This document shows positions 2,443 through 55,138 of a DNA stretch of 64,000 nucleotides, one piece after another. The notes beneath the pieces are model-generated. The model did not search any database. It saw nothing but the letters and a program-made list of their open reading frames with translations, and had not been told where the DNA came from. The position numbers were made by a program, and so were the translations under genes. Location: sequence record ON529858.1; one strand, 5' to 3'. How positions within the stretch are numbered: position 1 is the stretch's first letter; each line of letters begins with the position of its first letter.

Positions 2443-3048
2443 CTAGGCCGACAGCGACTTGATCACGCCGGCCAGGACCTTGCCGTCGACCCGGCCGGGA
2501 TACTTGGCCTGGAGCGCGGTCTTGATGACGCCGGTCTGGCGCTGCTCGATCGGAACGCCGGCCTCGGCCGCAGCCGCCTTCACGGCCTCGACCAGGGCGG
2601 CTTCGTCCAGCATGTCAGGCAGGAAGGCGGCGTAGAGCGCGACTTCCGAGTTCAGGAGCGTGATGAGGTCGGGATCGGCGCCGCGCTCGGTCTGGACCTT
2701 GACGGTTTCCTCGACGCCGGCCTTGAAGCGGTTGATGACCTTGACGCACTCATCGTCCGTCGGGTCCCGCTGCTCGCGCTTGCCGACGGCCTCGCACTCG
2801 GCCTTCAGCGTGATCAGCTTGCCGGCGACGGGCGATCGGGCCTTGCGTTCCTCCAGCGCCTGGGCGCCGATCTGTTCGAACAGGGTCATGGTCTCAGCTT
2901 CTTCCTTGGTGTCGTATGGGCCTTTGAGATCGTAGGGTCCTGGCCCGGTTCGCCGGTGCCAGCCTTCGAAGATGAACTCCTTCATCCCTGATCCGAGGAA
3001 CAGGGATTCGGCTTCATCTTCGTCCAGATACACGACGTCCACGGTCAA
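2443..3048 (-). CDS. GatB/YqeY-domain protein
   Basis: LITLKAE..K...TDDECVKVINRFK...E...EVALYAAFLPDML.E..L...V...........G..K.......G.VDGK.L...IK fits YqeY. Confidence 0.75.
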   Translation of the reverse strand: MTVDVVYLDEDEAESLFLGSGMKEFIFEGWHRRTGPGPYDLKGPYDTKEEAETMTLFEQIGAQALEERKARSPVAGKLITLKAECEAVGKREQRDPTDDECVKVINRFKAGVEETVKVQTERGADPDLITLLNSEVALYAAFLPDMLDEAALVEAVKAAAAEAGVPIEQRQTGVIKTALQAKYPGRVDGKVLAGVIKSLSA

Positions 3049-9298: not shown

Positions 9299-10726
9299 TT
9301 ACAGTTGCGCGTCGATGCGTTCACGGATTTGGTCGATGGTGGTCTCGTCGAAGGTCGTGCCGTTCTCGAACACGATGCCGAGCATGTCATGGGCGACGAA
9401 CTCGTCGGGGCCGATGTTGACGGTCTCGAAAGACCCGTCGTCATGGCGGACGACGGCGAACCGGCCGGCCTTCGACGACTTGCCCGGATCGGTGATCGGG
9501 TCCTTGCGGATTTCCACGATCTGGTTGTTGATGAACATCTGCGCCGCCTTCATCGCCCACTTGGCGGTGTCACGGTCCATGTCCGCCATGGCGATGCCGC
9601 CGCCCGAGCCGACCATGATGCTGTCAGCCGCGATCCCGAGGTCTTCGGCGACGCGGAACGGCAGGTCACAGGTCGTCTCGTTGATGCCGTCGCCCCACAG
9701 GACTTTGACGCTGTCGAGCACCATGAAGCCCTTGGAGTTCAGCGTGCCGCCGAAGGCCGCCTTGATCTTCGGCAAGATGGCGCGCAGCACCTGCTCCATG
9801 TCGCCGCTGTCGGGGCGGATAACCAGGGTGATGCCGGCCGCCTTGATGTCGTCGGCGAGCGAGCACCACATATCGACGGCGTTGAAGATGTCCCAGGTGT
9901 CGGACACGATCGACAGGGGGTTGTCCCGGCGCCCCATGGCGCTGAGCAGGTGCTGGAACGTCTCGATCTTGTCGCCCTTGGCGTCGCGGCCGTAGGCGCA
10001 CATGATCGAGTGCTCGGTCGCCGAGATCGAGAAGCCCGACATCTTGGAGAAGTAGTGGGCGTTGCAGTCGCGCACGCCAGCCATCGAGTCCGAGCCCATG
10101 AAGGACGTCAGGTAGGCGGAGGCGGCGATCAGGTTGGCGTCGTAGCCGGCCACGCCCCGCGCCATGAAGTCGAGCAGCGCGAACGGGCTGACCGGGTTGT
10201 CCGAGGTGCGGTCGAACACGGCCTTGATGCGCTTCTTCATGCCGAAGACGCGCGTCGCCACGGTCGAGCCATACCAGATGTCGCGCAGCAGCATCGTCTC
10301 CAGGTAGGAGGTCAGCCAGGGGAACTCGGGGTCGGTGTTCTCCAGCGTCACCAGCGGCGTGCGGACGGTGACCAGCAGGCCTTCGTCGATCGCCTTGATG
10401 CGAACCGGGACCTGCCCGTTGTATTTGGCGAACATCGAGCGCCAGCCCTCGCCGTTGAAGACGACGCCGTGCTCGGCGCAGAAGGCCTCGGCTTCGTCGA
10501 CGTCAGCTAGGGTGAAGCCTTGTTGCAGCTTGTGGAGCACGCGCTGTAGGGCGAACAGCATCACCTCGGGGTAGATGCCGCCCCGGCTCTCGATGTAGCT
10601 GTAGACGTATTGGGTGCCGGGCGGGTAGCCCAGGAAGTGGCTGGCCTTGTAGCTGTCGCTGTCAAGGATGAGATTGTAGGTCGGCATCGTGAACGCCGTC
10701 CGGGTCGTCTCGGTCAGTGCAGGCAT
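9299..10726 (-). CDS. nadV: Nicotinamide phosphoribosyltransferase (alternative start 10687)
   Basis: DSDSYKASH, ATEHSIMC, SIVSDTWD, VIRPDSGD and DPITDPGKSSKAGR motifs. Confidence 0.92.
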   Translation of the reverse strand: MPALTETTRTAFTMPTYNLILDSDSYKASHFLGYPPGTQYVYSYIESRGGIYPEVMLFALQRVLHKLQQGFTLADVDEAEAFCAEHGVVFNGEGWRSMFAKYNGQVPVRIKAIDEGLLVTVRTPLVTLENTDPEFPWLTSYLETMLLRDIWYGSTVATRVFGMKKRIKAVFDRTSDNPVSPFALLDFMARGVAGYDANLIAASAYLTSFMGSDSMAGVRDCNAHYFSKMSGFSISATEHSIMCAYGRDAKGDKIETFQHLLSAMGRRDNPLSIVSDTWDIFNAVDMWCSLADDIKAAGITLVIRPDSGDMEQVLRAILPKIKAAFGGTLNSKGFMVLDSVKVLWGDGINETTCDLPFRVAEDLGIAADSIMVGSGGGIAMADMDRDTAKWAMKAAQMFINNQIVEIRKDPITDPGKSSKAGRFAVVRHDDGSFETVNIGPDEFVAHDMLGIVFENGTTFDETTIDQIRERIDAQL

Positions 10727-10737
10727 CGGTGGTCCCC

Positions 10738-11850
10738 TCAGAGGCAGGTGCGGATGAGGCGTTCAATCACGAACGCATGATCTTCAAAGAACTCGTCGGC
10801 CTTGACCTCGGAGATGGGAAGCCAGAAGGCTTCGGCGGCGTCGTCGTTGGCCTTGACTTCCGGCAAGCGGTAGTCGTCGGGCAGTTTGAACAGGAAGGCG
10901 TGGGTGATCACGCGGCCCCGGCGAGAGCGGTTCGGATCGCCGAAGACGTCTCGGCCGCGCATGTGGGTGTGGAGCATCCGGCGCCGTTCGTCGGTGATGT
11001 AGTTGTCCCGCACGAGGTGGGAGAACAGCATCGTCTCTTCGAAGCACTCGCGCACCGCGCCGTCCAGCAGCGTCTCATGCGGCTCCAGGTGTCCGCCGGG
11101 GATGGCGAGCATCCCGGTCCCGTATCGGCCGCCGCGCCGGATCACCAGGACGTGCCCGGACTGGATGACGACGGCGTCGACGGTGGTGTGCGGCTCCTTG
11201 TGGCCCCACTCCGCCCGGTAGTCGATCTCGGCCTTGCGGTCGTCCATCAGGCGGCCATAGAACGACGTGCCCCGGAACTTGTCGAGGAAGGCGATCGTCT
11301 CGGGCGGCACGACCTGGGGCCAGACCGGGCCAGAGTCTTTCCAGGCGTTGTCGTGGAAGTTGACCCCGCCGGCGAAGTAGGCTTCGCGCAGACCGGTCGA
11401 GGCGATGTCGCCGGCCAGGGCGCCGGTCGGCTCATAGGTCCATTGCGGGAACAGCTTGAGATAGTAGGACGTCGCGTCCCGGTCGTTGCCCGTCAGGCAG
11501 ACGCGCGGACGCAGCATCGGGGCGGCGTGCAGCTTGACCAGCGTCTGGACCTGTTCGATCCACTCCTGAAGGTCGTAGGGACTGTCGGGCAGCGGCGCGA
11601 TCGTGATGCGCTGGCCGGCGGTGGTGTCGAAGCCGTCTCGGAAGAAGGCGGCGCCGTCGAGGGCATCGCGGATCATGCCGCGCCGCTCTTCATAGGTGAA
11701 GGGGTTGCGGGTGTCGCGGGCGAGGTTGGCGGAGCCGACCAGGATCAGCACCTTGTCGGCGCGCTCCAGGGCCTTCTCGATGACGGCGAGGTGGCCGTTG
11801 TGGAACGGCTGGAAGCGACCGATGAGGACCGCCATGTCGTAGCGGGTCAT
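10738..11850 (-). CDS. nadM: Bifunctional NMN adenylyltransferase / ADP-ribose pyrophosphatase (NadM-Nudix)
   Basis: [10 protein letters not shown] (HxGH), RNPFTYEER and Nudix box [22 protein letters not shown]; adjacent to NAMPT. Confidence 0.92.
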
Positions 11851-14099: not shown

Positions 14100-14684
14100 C
14101 TAGTCTTTTGCCTGCACGGCTTCAGCGCGCAGGGTGGGCTCGGGCACGACTTCGCTCCCTGCGGCGACCAGGGCGGCCTCGGCCGCCTCGTAGGCCCGTT
14201 CCAGGCGGTCCCAGAGTGGCTTGATGACATGGTTGCGGCAGACCTCGCGGAAGCGGGCGCGCTCCTTCAGATACATCTTCGCCATGCCGATGTTGACCTG
14301 CCCGGTGCCAGGGTCCTTGACGGACGCCTCGACGTTGGCGATGCGGTCGGCGACCTTCAGGGTGCAGGCGCGGGGATACTCCGCCAGCTTGGCGTAGATC
14401 GACTCGTTGCGCGCCTTACGGTTGGGGCCGATGCCGGAGACGGCCCAGACCAGGAGGGTCACGTCGGCGCCGAACTTCTTGCGCACGATCTCCCGGCGCT
14501 CTTCCGGCGTCAGGTCCTTCATGGTGTCTTCGATCACGTCGTGCAGGCGCGCCGCCGCGATCCAGTCTTCACCGGTGAAGCCGAACTCCTTCAGGATGCC
14601 TTCGACCTTCTCCAGATGGTAGCTATAGGGCAGGCCAGCGTATTGCTGGTCACCGTGGGCCTCGGCGGCGAACTTGGCGGGCAT
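14100..14684 (-). CDS. HD-domain hydrolase, SpoT/Mesh1-like
   Basis: AAEAHGDQ.Y..LPY..H...V, AAARLHDVIEDT and KVADRIANV. Confidence 0.85.
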   Translation of the reverse strand: MPAKFAAEAHGDQQYAGLPYSYHLEKVEGILKEFGFTGEDWIAAARLHDVIEDTMKDLTPEERREIVRKKFGADVTLLVWAVSGIGPNRKARNESIYAKLAEYPRACTLKVADRIANVEASVKDPGTGQVNIGMAKMYLKERARFREVCRNHVIKPLWDRLERAYEAAEAALVAAGSEVVPEPTLRAEAVQAKD

Positions 14685-17922: not shown

Positions 17923-19161
17923 TTAGCCCTTGACGCACACGATCTGCTTGAGGATGGCGACGACTTCGATCTGGCCGCTGGCGACCTGGATGTCGATGAC
18001 GTCGTCGATGGACTTGTAGGCGTTCGGGATTTCGTCGATCACCCCGGCGTCCTTGCGGCATTCCACGCCCTTCGTCGCTTCAGCCAGATCGGCTTCCGAG
18101 AACTGAGCCTTGGCCTGGGTGCGCGACATCGTCCGGCCGGCCCCGTGGGAGCACGAGCAGAAACTGTCGGCGTTGCCCTTGCCGCGAACGATGAAGGACT
18201 TGGCGCCCATCGAGCCGGGGATGATCCCGAGTTCATCCACGCCGGCGCGCACGGCGCCCTTGCGGGTGACCCACAGGTCCTCACCGAAGTGGCGCTCCTT
18301 CTCGACGTAGTTGTGGTGGCAGTTGACGGCCTGGGTGTCGGTCTGGAACGGCGGCAGGATCGACCGCATGACGCGCAAGACGTTGTGCATCATCATCTCG
18401 CGATTCACGCGCGCGAAGTCCTGGCCCCAGCCGACCGCCTCGACATAATCGTCGAACTCTTGCTCGCCTTCGCTGAACCACGCGAGGTCCTTGTCGAGCG
18501 GCTTTTGCCCGTCGCGCTTCAGCATCATCTCCTTCGCCTTGGCGATGAAGGTGCGACCGATCACGTTGCCGACGCCGCGCGAGCCAGAGTGCAGCATGAC
18601 CCAGACGCGGTCTTCCCGGTCCAGGCAGACTTCGATGAAGTGGTTGCCGCCGCCCAGGGTCCCGAGTTGCGTCACCGACGCCGCCTTCTCGAACTCCGGA
18701 TACTTCTCGCAGAGCAGCTTGAAGCGCGCCTCCAGACCCTTTTCGGTCCAGGCCTTCATGACGGGATTCGGGATGCCGTAGCGGCCGGGCTCCTGCCACG
18801 AGCCATGAACGCCCGGTCCGCCATGCGGAACCGCGCCTTCGATCAGGGACCGCAGCTTCTCCAGGTTGTCAGGCAGGTCGAGCGAGGTCAGCGTCGTGCG
18901 GATCGCCATCATGCCGCAGCCGATGTCGACGCCGACGGCGGACGGAATGATGGCGCCACGGGTCGGGATCACCGAGCCCACGGTCGCGCCGTATCCCATG
19001 TGGACGTCCGGCATCAGGGCGATGTGAGGGCCGACGATCTTCAAGGCGGCGACGTTGTGCGCCTGCACCTGGGCCGCGTGTTCGAAGCCGACCTCAATGC
19101 CGCCGGGGGCGTCGAGGAAGGCCTTGATCAGACCGCCGTGCCAACCATTGATCTCTTGCAC
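17923..19161 (-). CDS. rtcB: RNA ligase RtcB
   Basis: MPDVHMGYG, VGVDIGCGM, LGTLGGGNHFIE, HSGSRG, HNYVE, RKGA, SHGAGR and DEIPNAYK. Confidence 0.95.
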   Translation of the reverse strand: MQEINGWHGGLIKAFLDAPGGIEVGFEHAAQVQAHNVAALKIVGPHIALMPDVHMGYGATVGSVIPTRGAIIPSAVGVDIGCGMMAIRTTLTSLDLPDNLEKLRSLIEGAVPHGGPGVHGSWQEPGRYGIPNPVMKAWTEKGLEARFKLLCEKYPEFEKAASVTQLGTLGGGNHFIEVCLDREDRVWVMLHSGSRGVGNVIGRTFIAKAKEMMLKRDGQKPLDKDLAWFSEGEQEFDDYVEAVGWGQDFARVNREMMMHNVLRVMRSILPPFQTDTQAVNCHHNYVEKERHFGEDLWVTRKGAVRAGVDELGIIPGSMGAKSFIVRGKGNADSFCSCSHGAGRTMSRTQAKAQFSEADLAEATKGVECRKDAGVIDEIPNAYKSIDDVIDIQVASGQIEVVAILKQIVCVKG

Positions 19162-19289: not shown

Positions 19290-20123
19290 TTAGCGGCCGG
19301 CGGGGATGTTGATGAACGGCGTGGCGCCCGAACCGGTGACGGTCGGCAGCTTGCCGTCCCACTTCGCGATCGCCTGCTGTTGCAGGATCGCCGGAGACAG
19401 TTCACGGCTGCGGAGGCGATAGGCCTCGGCGTCGCCGGTAGCGATGGCGATCTTCTCGCGGGCCTGGGCCTCGGCGACGGCAACGCGGGCGTTGGCGGCG
19501 TTGACCTGTTGGTCGGCCTGGGTGCGCAGGGTGATCGCCTCGGTGATGACCGGCGGGAAGCGGATGGCGCCGATCCAGTCCAGTTGCGAGATCACGATGC
19601 CGTCCGCCGCCCACTTGCGTTGAACGCGGGCGAAGGCGCGACGAATGATCTCCTGGCGACCACCGGCCAGCAGTTGATCGACGCCGACCTGCTCGGTCTC
19701 CGCCGCGATCGCGGTGCGGATGTCGTTGCGGATCGGGCCGTCCAGCAGTTGATCGAAGGTCAGCCGATACTTCGTGTAGAGTTTCGGCAGGGTCGCCAGT
19801 TGCGGGGCGAGCACGATCTGGACGTCGGCCGTCATGGCGAGGCCGGTGCGGTCGGTGAACGAGATTTCCTCGTTCTCGGCGCCGCGCTCGTCCGGCTCAC
19901 GGGTGTAGGTGTAGGTCCGCTGGATCGTCGGATATTGCTCGATCCGTTCGACCATCGGCATCGCGCCGTGCCAGCCCGAGCCCAGGGCGCGTTCTTGGAC
20001 GCCGCCGGCGAGGTTGTTGATCTTGACGCCGCCGTTACCGGCTTCGACAGTCTTGCCGCACGCGGCGGTGGTCAGGGCGATGGCGGCAAGTGCCCCGATC
20101 GCCAGGAAACGCTTGATGTTCAA
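19290..20123 (-). CDS. SPFH/band 7 (prohibitin-like) lipoprotein
   Basis: Lipobox LTTAAC, VEAGNGGVK and a C-terminal coiled coil ending AIAKWDGKLP. Confidence 0.85.
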   Translation of the reverse strand: MNIKRFLAIGALAAIALTTAACGKTVEAGNGGVKINNLAGGVQERALGSGWHGAMPMVERIEQYPTIQRTYTYTREPDERGAENEEISFTDRTGLAMTADVQIVLAPQLATLPKLYTKYRLTFDQLLDGPIRNDIRTAIAAETEQVGVDQLLAGGRQEIIRRAFARVQRKWAADGIVISQLDWIGAIRFPPVITEAITLRTQADQQVNAANARVAVAEAQAREKIAIATGDAEAYRLRSRELSPAILQQQAIAKWDGKLPTVTGSGATPFINIPAGR

Positions 20124-25754: not shown

Positions 25755-26990
25755 TCAGGCGATGATGCCAATATCTTCGGCCAGGAGACGGTTCTGGAGC
25801 GTCGCCGGAGACAGCGGCAGTTCGTGAGCGATCTGCGCCAGGAACGGCGCGGGGTCTTGGTCCGGGTGGAAGCGGCGGAACATCTGCTCGGCTTCGCAGG
25901 CGCCGGCGAGGTCGAGGAAGGCGCGCTTGTCGACGCGACCGGGACGCATCAGCGCGGGGTCCAGGGCGTCGGCGTGGTTCGAGGTGATGAAGAGCAGGCG
26001 GCCGTCGCGCGAGGCGATGCCGTCGATCGCATTCAGCAGGCCCGAAAGGGTGATCCCGCCGAACGCCTCTTCCATGGCCTCGCCGGCGCCCTTCTTCTCC
26101 TTGGGCTTCTGGTGCTTGTCAGGATCGCGGGCTTCTGAGGCCTTGATGGCGTCGATGTCTTCGATCACGACGACGCCCGAACCGGCCTCGTTGATCGCGG
26201 CCTGGAGCCCGTTGTCGCCCGAGACGGCGGAGGGGTTGATGATGTAGATGGCCCGGCCGATGTGCGAGGCGATGGCGAAGATGAAGGTCGTCTTGCCCGT
26301 GCCGGGAGGCCCCTCAAAGGAGTAGCCGCGACGGTAGGGCACGCCGCGCGCGGCATACCACTGCTTGCGCGCCAGGAACCGCTCGACGTCGGCGATGACG
26401 CCCGCCTTCAGCGCCTTGTTCAGGTAGACGGTGTCGAGGCTGCGCTTGGGCCGGCGCTCGACCAGGGTGTAGCTGTTGCCGGTCCACAGGAAGACGGGGA
26501 TGGAGTTCTCATCTTCGTTGACGTTGCGGCTCTTGGCGATCAGGTCGTGGAGCGGCTGCTGCGAGCGGCCGAACGTCATGATCGTCAGGGTCTGCTTGCG
26601 CTTGTTGGTGAAGCCGTCCGACTTGCCCTCTTCGATCGAGCGGCGCACGAAGAACCAGCGCTTGTCGCTGCGGAAGACGTGCAGGCCCGAGCCCGGCGTC
26701 AGTTCGATCTTGGAGCGCTCGGTCTCGTGATCCCACCATTCGGCGACGCCCAGGCGACGCGCCCGCTTGGAGTCGGCGTGCCGGCCGAACCAGATCGAGA
26801 GGTAGTCGTAGGCGCGGTCGCTGTCGTAGACCGTGAGGGTGACGACGCACTGGCTCATGAACAACCGGGCGAGGTGCTGGGGGACCGACTTGGCGTAGGT
26901 CAGCAGCGTGGCGACCAGCGCGGTCGCGATCCCGGCGCCGGCCAGGGCGGAGAAGGCTTGATTGCTGGCAATGAAAGCCTGGAAGTCCAT
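25755..26990 (-). CDS. BCS1-like AAA+ ATPase
   Basis: N-terminal TM segment, BCS1_N-like region (LTPGSGLHVF), RRGYSFEGPPGTGKT, VIEDID, ITLSGLLNAIDG and LDPALMRPGRVD. Confidence 0.85.
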   Translation of the reverse strand: MDFQAFIASNQAFSALAGAGIATALVATLLTYAKSVPQHLARLFMSQCVVTLTVYDSDRAYDYLSIWFGRHADSKRARRLGVAEWWDHETERSKIELTPGSGLHVFRSDKRWFFVRRSIEEGKSDGFTNKRKQTLTIMTFGRSQQPLHDLIAKSRNVNEDENSIPVFLWTGNSYTLVERRPKRSLDTVYLNKALKAGVIADVERFLARKQWYAARGVPYRRGYSFEGPPGTGKTTFIFAIASHIGRAIYIINPSAVSGDNGLQAAINEAGSGVVVIEDIDAIKASEARDPDKHQKPKEKKGAGEAMEEAFGGITLSGLLNAIDGIASRDGRLLFITSNHADALDPALMRPGRVDKRAFLDLAGACEAEQMFRRFHPDQDPAPFLAQIAHELPLSPATLQNRLLAEDIGIIA

Positions 26991-51000: not shown

Positions 51001-53488
51001 CGTCAAGACCGGGCGCCGGCGGACGCGGACCGTCACGCTGAAGCGCTACCGCGCCTTCGTCGGCAATGAGCGCGTCGGCGAGATCGGCCAGCGGATGGCG
51101 ACGTTCGAGACGCGAGGCAAGGGCAACCGCTACGTCAGCGACCGGTGGGAGAGCCCGCGCTGGTATGCCGAGATCAAGGGCCAGGGCTGGCAGAAGCCGG
51201 TGTTCGAGACCCGCACCCAGGCCCTGGATGTGCTCGCCTACGTCCTGAACGACACGGCGCTCGGACAGGGGTTGACAGCCGATCTGTTTCCGATCTAAAT
51301 CCGATCGACATCAACAAGGAGGCCCACATGGATCAGCTTAAAGACTGGAATGCGCGGCGCGCGGGCGGTCGGATCACCATCGTCCACGCGACCGGCAAGG
51401 TCGTCGGCGTCGACGTCATCAAGCCCGTCGGCGGACGCACCGTCGCGGTCGACCTGAACGAACGCGAGTTCGATCTGGCGAACCCCGCCCTGGACGAACT
51501 GCTCGCTGCCGCTGCTGAGTTCGCGGCGCCCAACGACACCCCCGCGTCGCAGCGGCTGAAGGAAGCACTGGAGGCGTTCGCTTGAGCGACACTGTCCTGG
51601 TCGACGCCGCCAAGGCGTGGGAAATCCGCCGCCTGATGAACAGCATCAACAGTCGCCGGTCGGGCATGACGCCCGAGCGCGCTGTTGGGGACGCCATGCA
51701 ACCGGCCTGGGATCGCTGCCGGGGCAACCTGACCATCTCGCTCAACAAGGCCCAGGGCCTGTTGACCGGCACGGCCACCGCGCTTGAAGCGTTCGACGAC
51801 CCCGTCATCCCTTCTCTCGTCGCCGCGCTTCACCACGTCGGCCGGGTGCTGGAGGTCCAGTATCTGCCTGAGATGGATCAGCTACGCCACCGGGGCGACG
51901 AGGTGCATCTGCAAGTCCAGATCGCGTCCTTCATCCAGGAGCACGGCTTCGCTCACCCCGTCGACTACATCGGCGCGCCTTTCATCCTGGGCGAGACCTA
52001 CGAGACCTTCGACGGCCGCTCGGTCAAGATCGTCGAGTTGAAGCACGACCTGAAGGGCTACGAGACCGTGCTGGGCGACGATGACAAGCACCGTTACGAC
52101 CGCTCCGGCCTCCAAGAGCGCGGGCGCTGCACCGGGTCCAAGGCGACCTCCCCCCACAACCTCTATCCCCGGAGACTGTATGCCTGAGCCCCTGGACCAC
52201 GCCGCCGTCATGGCGGACCCAAGGTCGTTCGAGGTCACGGTCACCCGCACCACGCACGTCACCGTCCAGGTGACCGCGACGACCGAAGAAGACGCCCGCC
52301 AGAAGGCGGAGCGCGCCGCCGATCCGCTGCTGAAGACCATGCCGTCGACCTTCGACGCGGTCATCAATGCGTCCTGGCCGGCGCATCAGCAGGCGACGGG
52401 CGACATCGAGATCATCCAGGGCCTGGAGGTCCTGCGCGGCTGGTGGATCGTCACGTCCCTGGACTTCCAGGCGCGGGCCTACACCCCCAACGAGTTCTTC
52501 ACCGAGGACGTGGACTTCCAGGACAAGAAGACCATGTCCAAGCGCGCCCGCGAACTGCTGAACTCTCACGACCCCGGCAACCAGACGGTCTTCGGCGTCT
52601 ACCGCTACCACGGCTACGGCGCCCGCAAGCCGGGCGAGCCTTTCTGGACCTACGACGTCAAGAAGGAAAACGCCATGAAGGCCGTCCGCCGCCGCCTGAA
52701 CAAGGCGCAGGAGGAAGAGCGTCAGCGGATGGCTGCGCTGAAGCGCACCGTCGGCCTCGCCCAGACCGAGGCTGACATGGTCCGGGCGATCCTGGAGATG
52801 ACGAACAGCCCAGGCTACGGCCTGACCCGCTGCGCGAAAGGCCGCTGGACGACCCATGCGGCACTCGGCGATCGCGACCCCGCCACGACCGTCCTGGACG
52901 GCGAGTGGTCGGTCGACGTCGACGTCGTGCGTCACCTGCTCGATCGCGGGCTCGCCACGGTGTTCGACAAGTTCGCCGTCTCCGGTCAGCCCCGTCAAAT
53001 CACCCTGTCGCCCGCCGGCGTCGCCTACAAACCGAAGGTCCGATACGGATGAACAAGTCCCGAATCCGCGCGATGAGTTTCCTGGGCGGCTGCGTCGCAG
53101 CCGTCGGGATCACGGCCATGGTCAGCATCGCCGTCGTCGCCTGTTCGCCCAGGCCCGCCCAGGCCGGCGGCGAGATCGCGGCGGTCAAGATCAGTGAGAC
53201 CCCCGGCGGCTGCGCCGTCTACTGGATCAAGGACCCGAACACCAACAACGACGTCTACATCACCACGGTCTACGGCGAGCGCACCTGCTCGGTGGCGGTC
53301 CAGTGAGCGCGCCGTCCGAACCGACCCAGCCGCCCGCCTGGGCCTGGGCCTGCCTGATCGCGGCGATCGTCTTCGCGGGGCTTTCGTCCGGAGCCGGCGA
53401 GTTCTGGGGCCGCCAGTTGGTCGCCCTGTCGGGCCTTCTCATGGGCTTCGGCCTGCGCGAAATGCTGCTGCATAGGAGGCAGAAATAA
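48064..53488 (+). CDS. Array of ~17 small hypothetical genes (e.g. 48064-48414 Cys/His-rich, 48959-49336, 50613-50945, 51582-52187, 52180-53052, 53049-53306)
   Basis: Tightly coupled + strand ORFs with promoters at 48006, 48903 and 51272. Confidence 0.55.
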
Positions 53489-53514
53489 AATCTGACGTCA
53501 TCGAAAATAACTGA

Positions 53515-53543
53515 TTGACGTCGGCGGGTGGCCTCTCTACATA
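53515..53543 (+). promoter_or_regulatory. Promoter for the tRNA-like RNAs
   Basis: TTGACG-17-TACATA; the predicted start (~53550) coincides with a 9-bp hairpin. Confidence 0.65.
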
Positions 53544-53550
53544 GGTCATC

Positions 53551-53575
53551 AGCGGCGACGGACTAAGTCGCCGCT
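53551..53575 (+). other. Perfect 9-bp leader hairpin
   Basis: AGCGGCGAC/GTCGCCGCT with a 7-nt loop. Confidence 0.7.
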
Positions 53576-53585
53576 CGCGAACAGG

Positions 53586-53859
53586 CCGAGGTTAGCTCAG
53601 TTGGTAGAGCGCCGGAGGTCACAGTAGCGGAGGTTGGATTTAGCGAGGCATCGCGAACGCTGGTTCTTCACCGGCCGCCGCCATCCCGAGCGAAAGTCGG
53701 ACTGCCCCTTCGAAGGGCAGGACTTGAGGCGCCTGAGTAGGGCGGAGTGGATAGGGTTTTCGCGAGCCCCTGAAGCCTCTCCCCAAAGGTCGCCGAGACA
53801 ATCTTCGTGGTGAATAGAAGACCCGGAGGTCGGTGGTTCGAACCCATCACCTCGGACCA
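53586..53859 (+). ncRNA. tRNA-like RNA 1, with a 205-nt segment in place of the 7-nt anticodon loop
   Basis: Acceptor CCGAGGT/ACCTCGG (7 bp), D arm GCTC-AGTTGGTA-GAGC, anticodon stem CCGG/CCGG, variable loop AGGTC, T arm GGTGG-TTCGAAC-CCATC, A73 and CCA. Confidence 0.85.
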
Positions 53860-53882
53860 TTCGCGAGACGTGCGTTGACTAT

Positions 53883-54142
53883 CCTCCCTTAGCTTAGTGG
53901 AAGAGCGACAGGACCGTGCAGTAGGGGCCGTTAGGTCCCGCCCGATGCGAACGCCGCTGATTGCAAGCGGCGGCCGAGCAGAAGGTGGGATGAACCGGAT
54001 CGGCAGACGGGAAGAAAGGACCTTGTGTAGGGCGGCCCACTTCAGCCGCGTGAAAAAGGACCTGGGAGACCGGCGGAGCGAAACCCGAAACGCATGGATG
54101 AAGACCTGTAGACCCCGGTTCGAATCCGGCGAGGGAGGACCA
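53883..54142 (+). ncRNA. tRNA-like RNA 2, with a 192-nt segment in place of the anticodon loop
   Basis: Acceptor CCTCCCT/AGGGAGG, D arm GCTT-AGTGGAA-GAGC, anticodon stem ACAGG/CCTGT, T loop TTCGAAT (stem with one bulge), A73 and CCA. Confidence 0.85.
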
Positions 54143-54185
54143 ACCTCATTCAAGAGCGAGATCACGAACAGCATAGGAGGACACG

Positions 54186-54701
54186 ATGACCGACCAGCGC
54201 ACGAACCTGGAAGCCACCGACACCCCTCTGTTCCTCGCCGTCCAGATGATCGCCCGCGCCGGACTGGCTCATGGGTCGACCATGCTGGAACCCAGCGCCG
54301 GCACCGGCGCCATCGCCTCCGTCGCCAAGGCCACCGGCGTCGACGTCTGCATGGTCGAGTTGAACGCCCAGCGCGCGACAGACCTCCACAACCGCGACCT
54401 CGGGCCTGTCTGGTGCGGCGACTTCCTGTCGCTGCAACCGGGCCATTTCGCTCTCTTCGGCAAGCCGGCTCCGCTGTCCTTTGACGCGGTGGTCATGAAC
54501 CCGCCGATCAACGCTCATCCCCACGTCACCCGCGCCATCCAGTTCGTCCGCCCTGGCGGCCGGCTGGTCGCCCTGCTGCACCGCCACATCGCCCAGGGGT
54601 TCTATGACGCCCTGGGCGGCGAGTTCGAAGCCCTGCCCGACGACACCTTCGTCTTCAAGGGCAAGCCCATCCCGGCGGCGATCTGGTCGGTGACCCTGTG
54701 A
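54186..54701 (+). CDS. SAM-dependent amino-methyltransferase-like protein
   Basis: Motif I LEPSAGTGAIA; motif IV FDAVVMNPP(I); PGGRLVALL. Confidence 0.8.
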   Translation: MTDQRTNLEATDTPLFLAVQMIARAGLAHGSTMLEPSAGTGAIASVAKATGVDVCMVELNAQRATDLHNRDLGPVWCGDFLSLQPGHFALFGKPAPLSFDAVVMNPPINAHPHVTRAIQFVRPGGRLVALLHRHIAQGFYDALGGEFEALPDDTFVFKGKPIPAAIWSVTL

Positions 54702-55138
54702 AGTTCGCATGGCGCAAGCCCGGCGGCCTGCCGGAGTGTCCCTATTTCCGCCTGAGCCTGATCGGCCTGTTCGGCTACTCGATCCGCGTCCACGAATGGC
54801 TCGGCGACGATGACCGCGAGGCCCTGCACGACCACCCCCACGACTTCGCCACCCTGGTTCTGAAGGGCGGCTACACCGACGTCACCGACGCCGGCCGAGA
54901 GGTCGTGCGCGCCGGGTCCTTCCGGTTCCGTGCGGCCGAGCACCGGCACGCCGTTCTGGAGGTTCTGCCCGGCACCGTGACCCTGCTGTTCGTCTGGCCG
55001 CCACGCCGGCGCTGGGGCTTCTGGGTTGACGGCAAGCTGATCAAGCGGGACAAGTTCTTCGTGACCAAGGGACACCATGGTTGCGCCCCTGACGGACCGC
55101 GTGTCCGCCGCCGCCCGGACGGGACCCGAGTCACATGA
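54698..55138 (+). CDS. Cupin-fold metal-binding protein
   Basis: ALHDHPHDF..LVLKGGY.D..HRHAV..TLLF..WGFW. Confidence 0.7.
   Translation: MKFAWRKPGGLPECPYFRLSLIGLFGYSIRVHEWLGDDDREALHDHPHDFATLVLKGGYTDVTDAGREVVRAGSFRFRAAEHRHAVLEVLPGTVTLLFVWPPRRRWGFWVDGKLIKRDKFFVTKGHHGCAPDGPRVRRRPDGTRVT

Follow-up and report, generated by a model that had tools for sequence, protein, structure and literature searches.

Introduction

The textbook view is that tRNA genes of bacteria and phages are either uninterrupted or carry self-splicing group I introns, and that tRNA introns spliced by proteins are characteristic of archaea and eukaryotes. The bacterial tRNA introns have been surveyed at scale: among 5,292 tRNA group I introns, with matches accepted at 18 to 20 bits, 98.5% combine a U at position −1 with a terminal guanosine (ωG), and insertion is always within the loop (Williams 2020, 10.1101/2020.01.27.920355). 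Known settings of these introns, which belong to subgroup IC3, are tRNA-Leu (UAA), tRNA-fMet, tRNA-Ile (CAU), and tRNA-Arg (CCU), plus 17 newer ones (10.1101/2020.01.27.920355), and all phage introns known by 2014 lay in protein-coding genes, not in tRNA genes (review, PMC3984707). Here we describe two genes, G1 and G2, found in the first 64 kb of the genome of Brevundimonas phage vB_BgoS-Bajun (Dolichocephalovirinae; ON529858.1, 207,261 bp), a stretch referred to below as the window, in which window and record coordinates are identical. The lineage of G1 and G2 is marked by the features of a tRNA-Phe(GAA) with C1-G72, A73, and an encoded CCA, and by an interruption 3' of nucleotide 31. We regard them as tRNA genes with an intervening sequence, and there is a substantial chance that they reveal a new splicing system.

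Two interrupted tRNA-Phe-type genes in phage Bajun

The 697-nt gap between BAJUN_01060 and BAJUN_01070 (53489-54185) is unannotated in the GenBank record. Read from the sequence, it holds two tandem tRNA-shaped genes on the + strand, G1 (53586-53859) and G2 (53883-54142), whose parts are listed in Table 1. In both genes the acceptor stem is of 7 bp and is followed by U8 A9 and a canonical D arm; the anticodon stem has five positions, and after the variable loop come a T arm containing UUCGAA, then A73 and an encoded CCA. The 5' half of G1 reads CCGAGGU-UA-GCUC-AGUUGGUA-GAGC-G-CCGGA and its 3' half UAGAAGA-CCCGG-AGGUC-GGUGG-UUCGAAC-CCAUC-ACCUCGG-A-CCA; the corresponding halves of G2 are CCUCCCU-UA-GCUU-AGUGGAA-GAGC-G-ACAGG and AUGAAGA-CCUGU-AGAC-CCCGG-UUCGAAU-CCGG(C)G-AGGGAGG-A-CCA. 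With default settings ARAGORN makes no tRNA call in the 64-kb window, throughout which the Rfam tRNA model also stays below threshold. Once long introns are allowed, ARAGORN calls both genes: G2 as tRNA-Phe(GAA) with a 185-nt intron directly 3' of the 5' strand of the anticodon stem, and G1 through an implausible, forced tRNA-Cys model. In blastn comparisons with phage records, the G1 exons resemble phage tRNA-Phe genes, the match being weak in the D-arm region. Two tandem tRNA-shaped genes with these arms had been proposed in a preliminary description of the DNA, and the sequence reading, the intron-tolerant ARAGORN calls, and the covarying homologs presented below all bear this out, well past anything attributable to chance.

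That description also had the anticodon loops replaced by inserts of 205 and 192 nt, which no longer holds. The final 7 nt of each insert so delimited form an anticodon loop in normal register beside the 3' stem strand, so that a Phe-type GAA loop is intact at the 3' end of each and the intervening RNAs measure 198 and 185 nt. The G2 loop is canonical (A32 U33 G34 A35 A36 G37 A38, AUGAAGA). For G1 the loop is either UAGAAGA, with GAA, G37, and A38 but A33, or the 8-nt AUAGAAGA: positions 53806-53826 read GUGA-AUAGAAGA-CCCGG, and the A that is extra relative to AUGAAGA gives either an 8-nt loop or A33. If the loop is of 8 nt, G1 would resemble frameshift-suppressor tRNAs. The minimum-free-energy z-scores of the two genes are unremarkable (−1.3 for G1 and −1.5 for G2).

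Homologs in other phages

A blastn search of the region against 50,697 phage records returned Bajun itself only, and IMG/VR scans with motifs from the Bajun inserts (CAGTAG..GCGAACGC..GTAGGGCGG and GTAGGGCGG..GAAGA..GTTCGAA) gave nothing real. Patterns based on the exons, run on IMG/VR and a metagenome collection, recovered Caulobacter phages CcrColossus and CcrPW and one intronless homolog, the other matches being coding-sequence noise; two further patterns added one new member (L276) and a YrlA/Ro locus. Each of the metagenome and genome scans used one pattern or query. Synteny was the productive route, with the methyltransferase encoded by BAJUN_01070 leading to CcrColossus and CcrPW, where its homologs are 41% identical, and the cupin encoded by BAJUN_01080 leading to metagenomic loci. 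In both Caulobacter phages an unannotated gap of ~675 nt lies directly upstream of the methyltransferase gene and contains two tandem tRNA-Phe(GAA) genes, here called A and B, with inserts of 200 and 172-173 nt after nucleotide 31. Contigs with cupin homologs, together with one pattern scan, supplied six more interrupted genes of tRNA-Phe type (Table 1). The family analyzed here is small, comprising ten independent genes in nine phage loci, and includes high-GC and low-GC phages. ARAGORN with introns allowed assigns eight of the ten to tRNA-Phe(GAA); the genes with A33 are mis-modeled, L108 as tRNA-Ser and G1 as noted above.

The intronless homolog, which has C1-G72, A73, CCA, and the loop AUGAAGA, belongs to a cluster of 22 tRNA genes carried by a 250-kb IMG/VR phage contig, and the same gene recurs on a 341-kb metagenomic contig. 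Taking the inserts out of G2 or the CcrColossus genes gives exactly its architecture, and it thus marks the empty insertion site exactly. Bajun itself has 27 other tRNA genes for 17 amino acids and a tmRNA, tRNAs for Phe, Lys, and Ala being absent from this set, and a genome-wide ARAGORN run that tolerates introns gives no further genuine interrupted tRNA. The ordinary tRNAs and the tmRNA (L012 22322-27348, L013 31070-33223) lie beyond the window, 80-140 kb from G1 and G2, and several of the tRNAs are unusually long as called (Trp, 88 nt; Cys, 87 nt; Asn, 86 nt; Met, 85 nt). Another stretch of ~1 kb without an annotated gene, likewise beyond the window, occurs at record positions 77746-78751 (L011 15747-16752) and gives only weak hairpin-type chance matches to Rfam at E ≤ 1.

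The sequence TTGAC(G/A), a 17-nt spacer, and TAnnnA/T precede the genes in Bajun, CcrColossus, L107, L108, L109, and L195. The dedicated promoter that had been proposed for the Bajun pair is a plausible candidate: the hexamers are present and recur in five other loci, but a stricter consensus promoter scan gave no score to the Bajun site at 53515-53543.

Conservation of the tRNA body, the junctions, and the insert

C1-G72 and A73 are common to the ten genes, nine of which also encode CCA. We aligned nine of the ten, with inserts removed, together with CcrPW gene A and the intronless homolog. In this alignment 97.1% of the cells in cloverleaf stems are paired and 17 of 21 pairs have changed on both sides; none of 500 shuffles reaches the observed values, and partners slid out of register pair at 33-48%. 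Compensatory changes are also seen in the acceptor stem when CcrColossus is compared with CcrPW. The tRNA halves are conserved and covary in related phages, the opposite of what decayed pseudogenes would show.

With exon-insert boundaries placed by the tRNA register, the insert starts directly 3' of nucleotide 31 in every one of the ten genes. At its other end, a 7-nt segment N-N-GAA-R-N abuts the 3' stem strand, again in ten of ten, with a purine at position 37 throughout and U33 in seven (G2 and six others). A spacer of 1-2 nt is followed by a closing helix of 4-6 bp and varying sequence, which is clear in nine genes; in L107 it is imperfect and displaced by 5 nt. At −1 of the 5' junction, each of the ten genes has the nucleotide with which its insert ends (G/G in eight, A/A in G1, and U/U in L107), a correspondence that only 1 of 90 dealings of the observed last nucleotides (8 G, 1 A, 1 U) yields. 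Because of this identity the junction can shift by one nucleotide, and it suggests that both junction sites may be read in the same way.

The inserts appear to be constrained as well. CcrColossus B and CcrPW B have identical exons and inserts that differ at 38 alignment columns, with 8 compensatory pairs, which suggests that insert helices are kept by selection. Folding and the covariation between CcrColossus and CcrPW back only nested, Y-shaped insert structures. An AGUA/GAAA internal loop stands beside the closing helix in about six of the ten genes, in both orientations; the G2 insert has this loop and two branched arms. G1 and CcrColossus A have a 5-bp hairpin in common, with the loop (A)UUCUUCA.

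Several other resemblances were considered and set aside. Kissing of hairpin loops complementary to the anticodon strand (UUCUUCA in G1 and CcrColossus A, CCACUUCA in G2, and GUUUUUC in L108) is not favored over random 7-mers and all possible local hairpin loops (Fisher p = 0.42). Look-alikes of hairpin-ribozyme loops A and B, the hammerhead, the K-turn, box C/D, the sarcin-ricin motif (AGUA/GAA), and RNase P CR-I, sought by eye, are in no case consistent across members. In L195 (1152-1338), the 112-nt insert repeats the anticodon stem of its gene (AUAGG...CCUAU) around a 7-nt loop, CAGAUCA; this copy, absent from the other members, is possibly an alternative pairing partner or a relic of duplication.

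A linked methyltransferase and cupin

In all nine loci a methyltransferase homolog lies immediately downstream of the interrupted tRNA, often abutting its CCA, and the cupin gene comes next. The methyltransferase gives weak Pfam and NCBIfam matches to RsmD, MTS, KsgA/Erm, and Trm14 types. Its AlphaFold2 (AF2) model, with a predicted local distance difference test (pLDDT) score of 88, is closest to the putative archaeal RNA methyltransferase PH1948 and to the tRNA m2G enzymes Trm11 and TrmN, and BAJUN_01070 is read as a putative RNA amino-group methyltransferase. A role as a G37-specific analog of Trm5 was considered and is weakened, as five members with A37 keep the enzyme.

BAJUN_01080 is 55% identical to the CcrColossus cupin and has 40 homologs in a large protein collection; its model (pLDDT 96.7) is closest to the Mn-cupin TM1459. 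Among sequenced phages, the module came to light in Bajun, CcrColossus, and CcrPW, and we found it in no others. Closer cupin homologs are also neighbors of ordinary phage tRNA clusters (L198, L200) and of a second tRNA-like type (L112, L196), and the distant cellular homologs, in 80 loci, are not tRNA linked. In one distant cupin locus (L114 3809-5675), a DUF8385 protein and a weak radical-SAM (S-adenosylmethionine) protein follow the cupin, and an MTS-type methyltransferase is encoded 1.7 kb upstream, an arrangement that may point to a larger RNA-modification set.

The second tRNA-like type is found directly upstream of the cupin homolog at L112 2916-3094 and L196 about 860-1020. It has normal acceptor, D, and T arms, an extended anticodon-like stem of 6-7 bp, an insert of ~100 nt (closed in L112 by CGGAAG/UUUCCG), and a 3' strand, AAUAAC, that lacks GAA; L112 reaches 38.4 bits against the Rfam tRNA model, in an alignment with a 111-nt insertion. 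Upstream of another cupin homolog, at L113 about 2760-3000, a normal anticodon arm (CACC-CUGAUAA-GGUG) and a T arm make up the 3' part of an element in which ~150 nt, with no canonical D arm, separate the 5' strand of the acceptor from the anticodon stem. IMG/VR contigs of 27-45 kb (L314-L327) carry tRNA-like genes of the form ...GTAGCTCAGNNGGTAGAGCACCGCRCCYGGAGGTATGCGCAGGTTCAAGTCCTGCC...CCA, which receive no ARAGORN call and are aberrant in the anticodon-arm region. At L323 2990-3340, tRNA-like elements with the T arm before the D arm precede an open reading frame with Ro60/TROVE-like motifs (NSAGGYTF, LGTDGGTYY); these features mark a YrlA-type Y RNA locus, which turned up incidentally.

Table 1. 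Features of the Bajun window and insert lengths in the metagenomic members of the family
Feature	Position	Strand	Description
Promoter-like site	53515-53543	+	TTGACG-17 nt-TACATA, upstream of the gene pair; sequence reading
Predicted leader hairpin	53552-53575	+	GCGGCGAC-GGACUAA-GUCGCCGC, between the promoter-like site and G1; sequence reading
G1 5' exon	53586-53616	+	Acceptor CCGAGGU, U8 A9, D arm, G26, anticodon-stem CCGGA
G1 intervening RNA	53617-53814	+	198 nt; closing helix UCAC/GUGA, AGUAG motifs, hairpin with loop UUCUUCA
G1 3' exon	53815-53859	+	Loop UAGAAGA, CCCGG, variable loop AGGUC, T arm, acceptor 3' strand, A73, CCA
G2 5' exon	53883-53912	+	CCUCCCU, U8 A9, D arm, anticodon-stem 5' strand ACAGG
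G2 intervening RNA	53913-54097	+	185 nt; 1-nt spacer A, closing helix CCGUGC/GCAUGG
G2 3' exon	54098-54142	+	Loop AUGAAGA, CCUGU, T arm with one bulged nt, AGGGAGG, A73, CCA
BAJUN_01070, methyltransferase	54186-54701	+	Small class I SAM methyltransferase, 171 aa; LEPSAGxG and (N/C)PP(R/I) motifs
BAJUN_01080, cupin	54698-55138	+	146 aa; four invariant histidines
RtcB RNA ligase	17923-19161	-	Pfam RtcB, 414 bits
SPFH/Band 7 protein	19290-20123		Adjoins RtcB
NAD (nicotinamide adenine dinucleotide) salvage enzymes	9299-11850		Nicotinamide phosphoribosyltransferase; NMN (nicotinamide mononucleotide) adenylyltransferase/Nudix
GTP pyrophosphokinase-like protein	14100-14684		
BCS1-type AAA ATPase	25755-26990		
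L107 insert			157 nt
L108 insert			132 nt by the boundaries used here; 130 nt by ARAGORN, with another placement
L109 insert			145 nt
L111 insert			138 nt
L195 insert			112 nt
L276 insert			146 nt

A spliced precursor or an unspliced RNA

The reading we favor, at about an even chance, is that genes of the G1/G2 type are precursors of a spliced tRNA-Phe, with an intron of no described class. A promoter of its own would drive the pair, in one transcript with the methyltransferase and cupin genes. The tRNA body folds as a cloverleaf, as the covariation shows, and the intervening RNA forms a branched domain whose closing helix starts 1-2 nt past the anticodon stem. The seven nucleotides of the future loop then make a single strand bridging to the 3' stem strand, as sequence and pairing in nine of the ten genes show. 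Cuts on both strands at the helix-helix junction, joining of nucleotide 31 to nucleotide 32, and end processing of the precursor would produce a 76-nt tRNA-Phe. The cutter may be a protein, an endonuclease measuring from the tRNA body, after which RtcB would seal the 2',3'-cyclic-phosphate and 5'-OH ends, or catalysis may lie in the intervening RNA itself. The low sequence conservation of the inserts and their size range of 112-200 nt lean towards a protein cutter; the selected, elaborate structure and the recurring A-rich internal loop by the closing helix lean towards an RNA that is active or that recruits an enzyme. Judging by their linkage, the methyltransferase and the cupin probably act on this RNA; they may modify the product, or the insert may serve them as a handle.

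Among described introns that proteins splice, the closest are the tRNA introns of archaea and eukarya, with a bulge-helix-bulge (BHB) motif, an EndA/Sen endonuclease, and an RtcB ligase. As in these, the phage genes have no ribozyme signature, a helix closing the insert is stacked on the anticodon stem, the junctions are symmetric at the helix end, and an RtcB ligase is at hand, here encoded by the phage. Unlike them, the phage inserts lack two 3-nt bulges 4 bp apart, sit at 31/32 rather than 37/38, and are far larger and under structural selection. The phage junction is an internal loop of 1-2 nt (5' strand) by 7-8 nt (3' strand) between two helices, and, by sequence reading, a BHB motif in either orientation yields no 7-nt loop product. 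No EndA-like gene was seen among the neighbors of the module, to which this search was confined. A further parallel is SOS splicing of transposon hairpins from animal mRNAs, in which an end-paired insert is excised and the flanks are joined by an RtcB-type ligase, with no need of classical intron signals (PMC12779559); the likeness is an analogy of logic only, since that system works on eukaryotic mRNA and responds to long inverted repeats.

Several observations weigh against splicing. Excision of the insert is something we infer from sequence. Position 33 is not U in three of the ten genes (A33 in G1 and L108, C33 in L111), the G1 anticodon stem has an A31.C39 mismatch, and a nucleotide is bulged in the 3' strand of the G2 T stem. 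The bulge, between pairs 49-65 and 50-64, is common to G2 and CcrColossus B (L014 5703-5951), which suggests that the two genes of a pair may be distinct, conserved types; together with the stem mismatch and the non-U33 genes, it could point to a non-decoding role. A global alignment of all inserts showed little shared sequence and RNAalifold returned no structure for it, which speaks against a single conserved ribozyme core. On the side of the proteins, neighbor comparison found nothing conserved beyond the methyltransferase and the cupin, and so no linked endonuclease candidate. The intronless homolog is beside neither gene, which indicates that the enzymes track the insert and not tRNA-Phe as such. 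Finally, RtcB, encoded by phiCbK and many other Caulobacter and Brevundimonas phages, is common in relatives where the module was not found. The preliminary description had suggested that the phage RtcB might close a tRNA intron; given this wide distribution the link is weak, and RtcB is best regarded as a possible sealing enzyme that is not module specific.

The strongest alternative, which we judge unlikely but serious, is that the RNAs act unspliced. A tRNA-like body with its acceptor, D and T arms, CCA, and an exposed GAA strand would then be joined to a structured domain in a non-decoding RNA, serving as a substrate, cofactor, guide, or regulator for the methyltransferase and cupin, or acting as a decoy for a tRNA-Phe-binding host factor. 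The size and structure of the inserts, with helices apparently under selection, would suit such a role, as would the tie of the methyltransferase to the interrupted genes in nine of nine loci and not to the intronless homolog, the departures at position 33, and the shared T-stem bulge. In the second tRNA-like type, found next to the cupin, a normal loop is missing altogether, and phage tRNA mimicry of the Y RNA kind has precedent (PMC12135203; L323). What a mimic does not need is a 7-nt U33-GAA-R37 loop segment in the register of the intronless homolog, with a loop sequence the same as in a tRNA of a normal tRNA cluster, and Bajun is otherwise without tRNA-Phe. Since the GAA loop is intact at the 3' end of the insert, an ordinary spliced tRNA-Phe is a possible product. 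The choice drawn up in the preliminary description, between a new class of tRNA intron and an unspliced mimic or decoy, thus tilts: the intron class stays the best reading and the mimic or decoy is weakened.

Spliced precursors could be one part of a broader arrangement, to which we give somewhat less than an even chance. Phages would carry a so far unrecognized tRNA-splicing system with a class of structured introns of 110-200 nt placed 5' of the whole tRNA-Phe anticodon loop. Their removal would fall either to an RNA of a new kind, self-splicing or self-cleaving, or to an endonuclease of phage or bacterial origin acting with RtcB, and the functional partners of the system would be a four-histidine cupin and an RNA methyltransferase dedicated to it.

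Comparison with known RNA families

The whole window has no match in Rfam 15 at gathering thresholds, and at E ≤ 10 the stretch 53450-54250 gives only a chance M23 match. No match at E ≤ 10 was obtained in Bajun or CcrColossus for group II introns or the small ribozymes (hammerhead, twister, pistol, hatchet, hepatitis delta virus [HDV], and hairpin), and none at E ≤ 5 for any intron or ribozyme family in five metagenomic loci. The earlier failure to find a group I P7 consensus, group II features, or a tmRNA tag holds, and the scan adds no significant match to a known intron or tmRNA family.

It is very improbable that the inserts are highly divergent group I introns, spliced through guanosine as in the bacterial IC3 tRNA introns. 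They share with these a long structured RNA in the anticodon region, exons that can still form the anticodon stem, and, in Bajun and CcrColossus, a length of 172-200 nt, close to that of the Azoarcus group I intron. Against this, five inserts have only 112-146 nt, too short for a group I P3-P9 core, and the phage site lies 5' of the whole loop, the position after nucleotide 31 with a purine at −1 being outside described settings. Position −1 is G in eight genes, A in one, and U in one, and the gene with U-1 (L107) ends in U, so no gene combines U-1 with the terminal G seen in nearly all tRNA group I introns; the last insert nucleotide, G in eight of the ten genes, is the sole group-I-like trait at the junctions. 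A covarying pseudoknot of P3/P7 type was not found, with folding tools that do not predict pseudoknots. The Rfam group I model has no bacterial seeds and is insensitive (10.1101/2020.01.27.920355), but no Intron_gpI match appears even at E ≤ 10 in 800-nt stretches of Bajun and CcrColossus, or at E ≤ 5 in the five further loci; the published survey accepted matches of 18 to 20 bits.

Less probable again is a reading as nonfunctional tRNA genes, broken up by an inserted element, or as a chance likeness to tRNA, which the blank annotation of three GenBank records and the loop and stem defects of G1 might suggest: every stem is kept by compensatory change across ten lineages, exons stay identical between CcrColossus B and CcrPW B over a diverging insert, and promoter-like hexamers and gene linkage are conserved.

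The known RNAs that join tRNA-like parts to a structured domain are tmRNA and the YrlA-type Y RNAs, the partners of Ro60. G1 and G2 are like tmRNA in having a tRNA-like acceptor and T-arm end and, where a simple anticodon arm would stand, a large structured insert, and differ in having a full D stem and anticodon stem and no G3.U70 (position 3-70 is G-C in G1 and U-A in G2), tag frame, or pseudoknot series. ARAGORN calls a tmRNA only at an 80% threshold, spanning both genes and with an unidentified tag, and Bajun has a separate tmRNA elsewhere in its genome. YrlA RNAs likewise join D- and T-arm elements to an extra structured part and show weak Rfam similarity, but their tRNA part is circularly permuted, T before D, with a closed acceptor end and an open anticodon end; the phage genes have the normal arm order, a free CCA end, an anticodon strand, and no linked Ro60. 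The similarity is a CcrColossus match to RF02553 (25.3 bits, E = 0.0048, against a gathering score of 69), which runs from the 3' half of gene A into the 5' half of gene B and pairs halves from two genes with non-matching acceptor strands; the Rfam scan of the Bajun window gave no YrlA match, and the ten large window proteins scanned have no Ro (TROVE) domain. Although CcrColossus is reported to have a Ro60 homolog and a Y-like RNA (PMC12135203), YrlA-type RNAs and tmRNA-like devices are, on these features, the least probable of the explanations considered.

Significance

Full-text literature searches found no description of these interrupted genes. The CcrColossus genome paper lists 28 tRNAs and no other functional RNA, and the region is left blank in the GenBank records of Bajun, CcrColossus, and CcrPW. 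Because ARAGORN and tRNAscan at default settings and Rfam all miss such genes, phage tRNA complements are under-counted, and the apparent lack of a tRNA-Phe in Bajun follows from standard annotation missing its interrupted genes. Two cultivable systems are at hand, Bajun on Brevundimonas goettingensis and CcrColossus on Caulobacter crescentus. If splicing is confirmed, the bacterial world would gain its first tRNA intron outside group I, and phages their first intron in a tRNA gene. Depending on the cutter, a new ribozyme would be added, or a bacterial or phage endonuclease-ligase pathway for tRNA would come to light, with a native substrate for the phage RtcB. If the RNAs instead act unspliced, they would be a new kind of tRNA-based RNA that works with a methyltransferase and a cupin.

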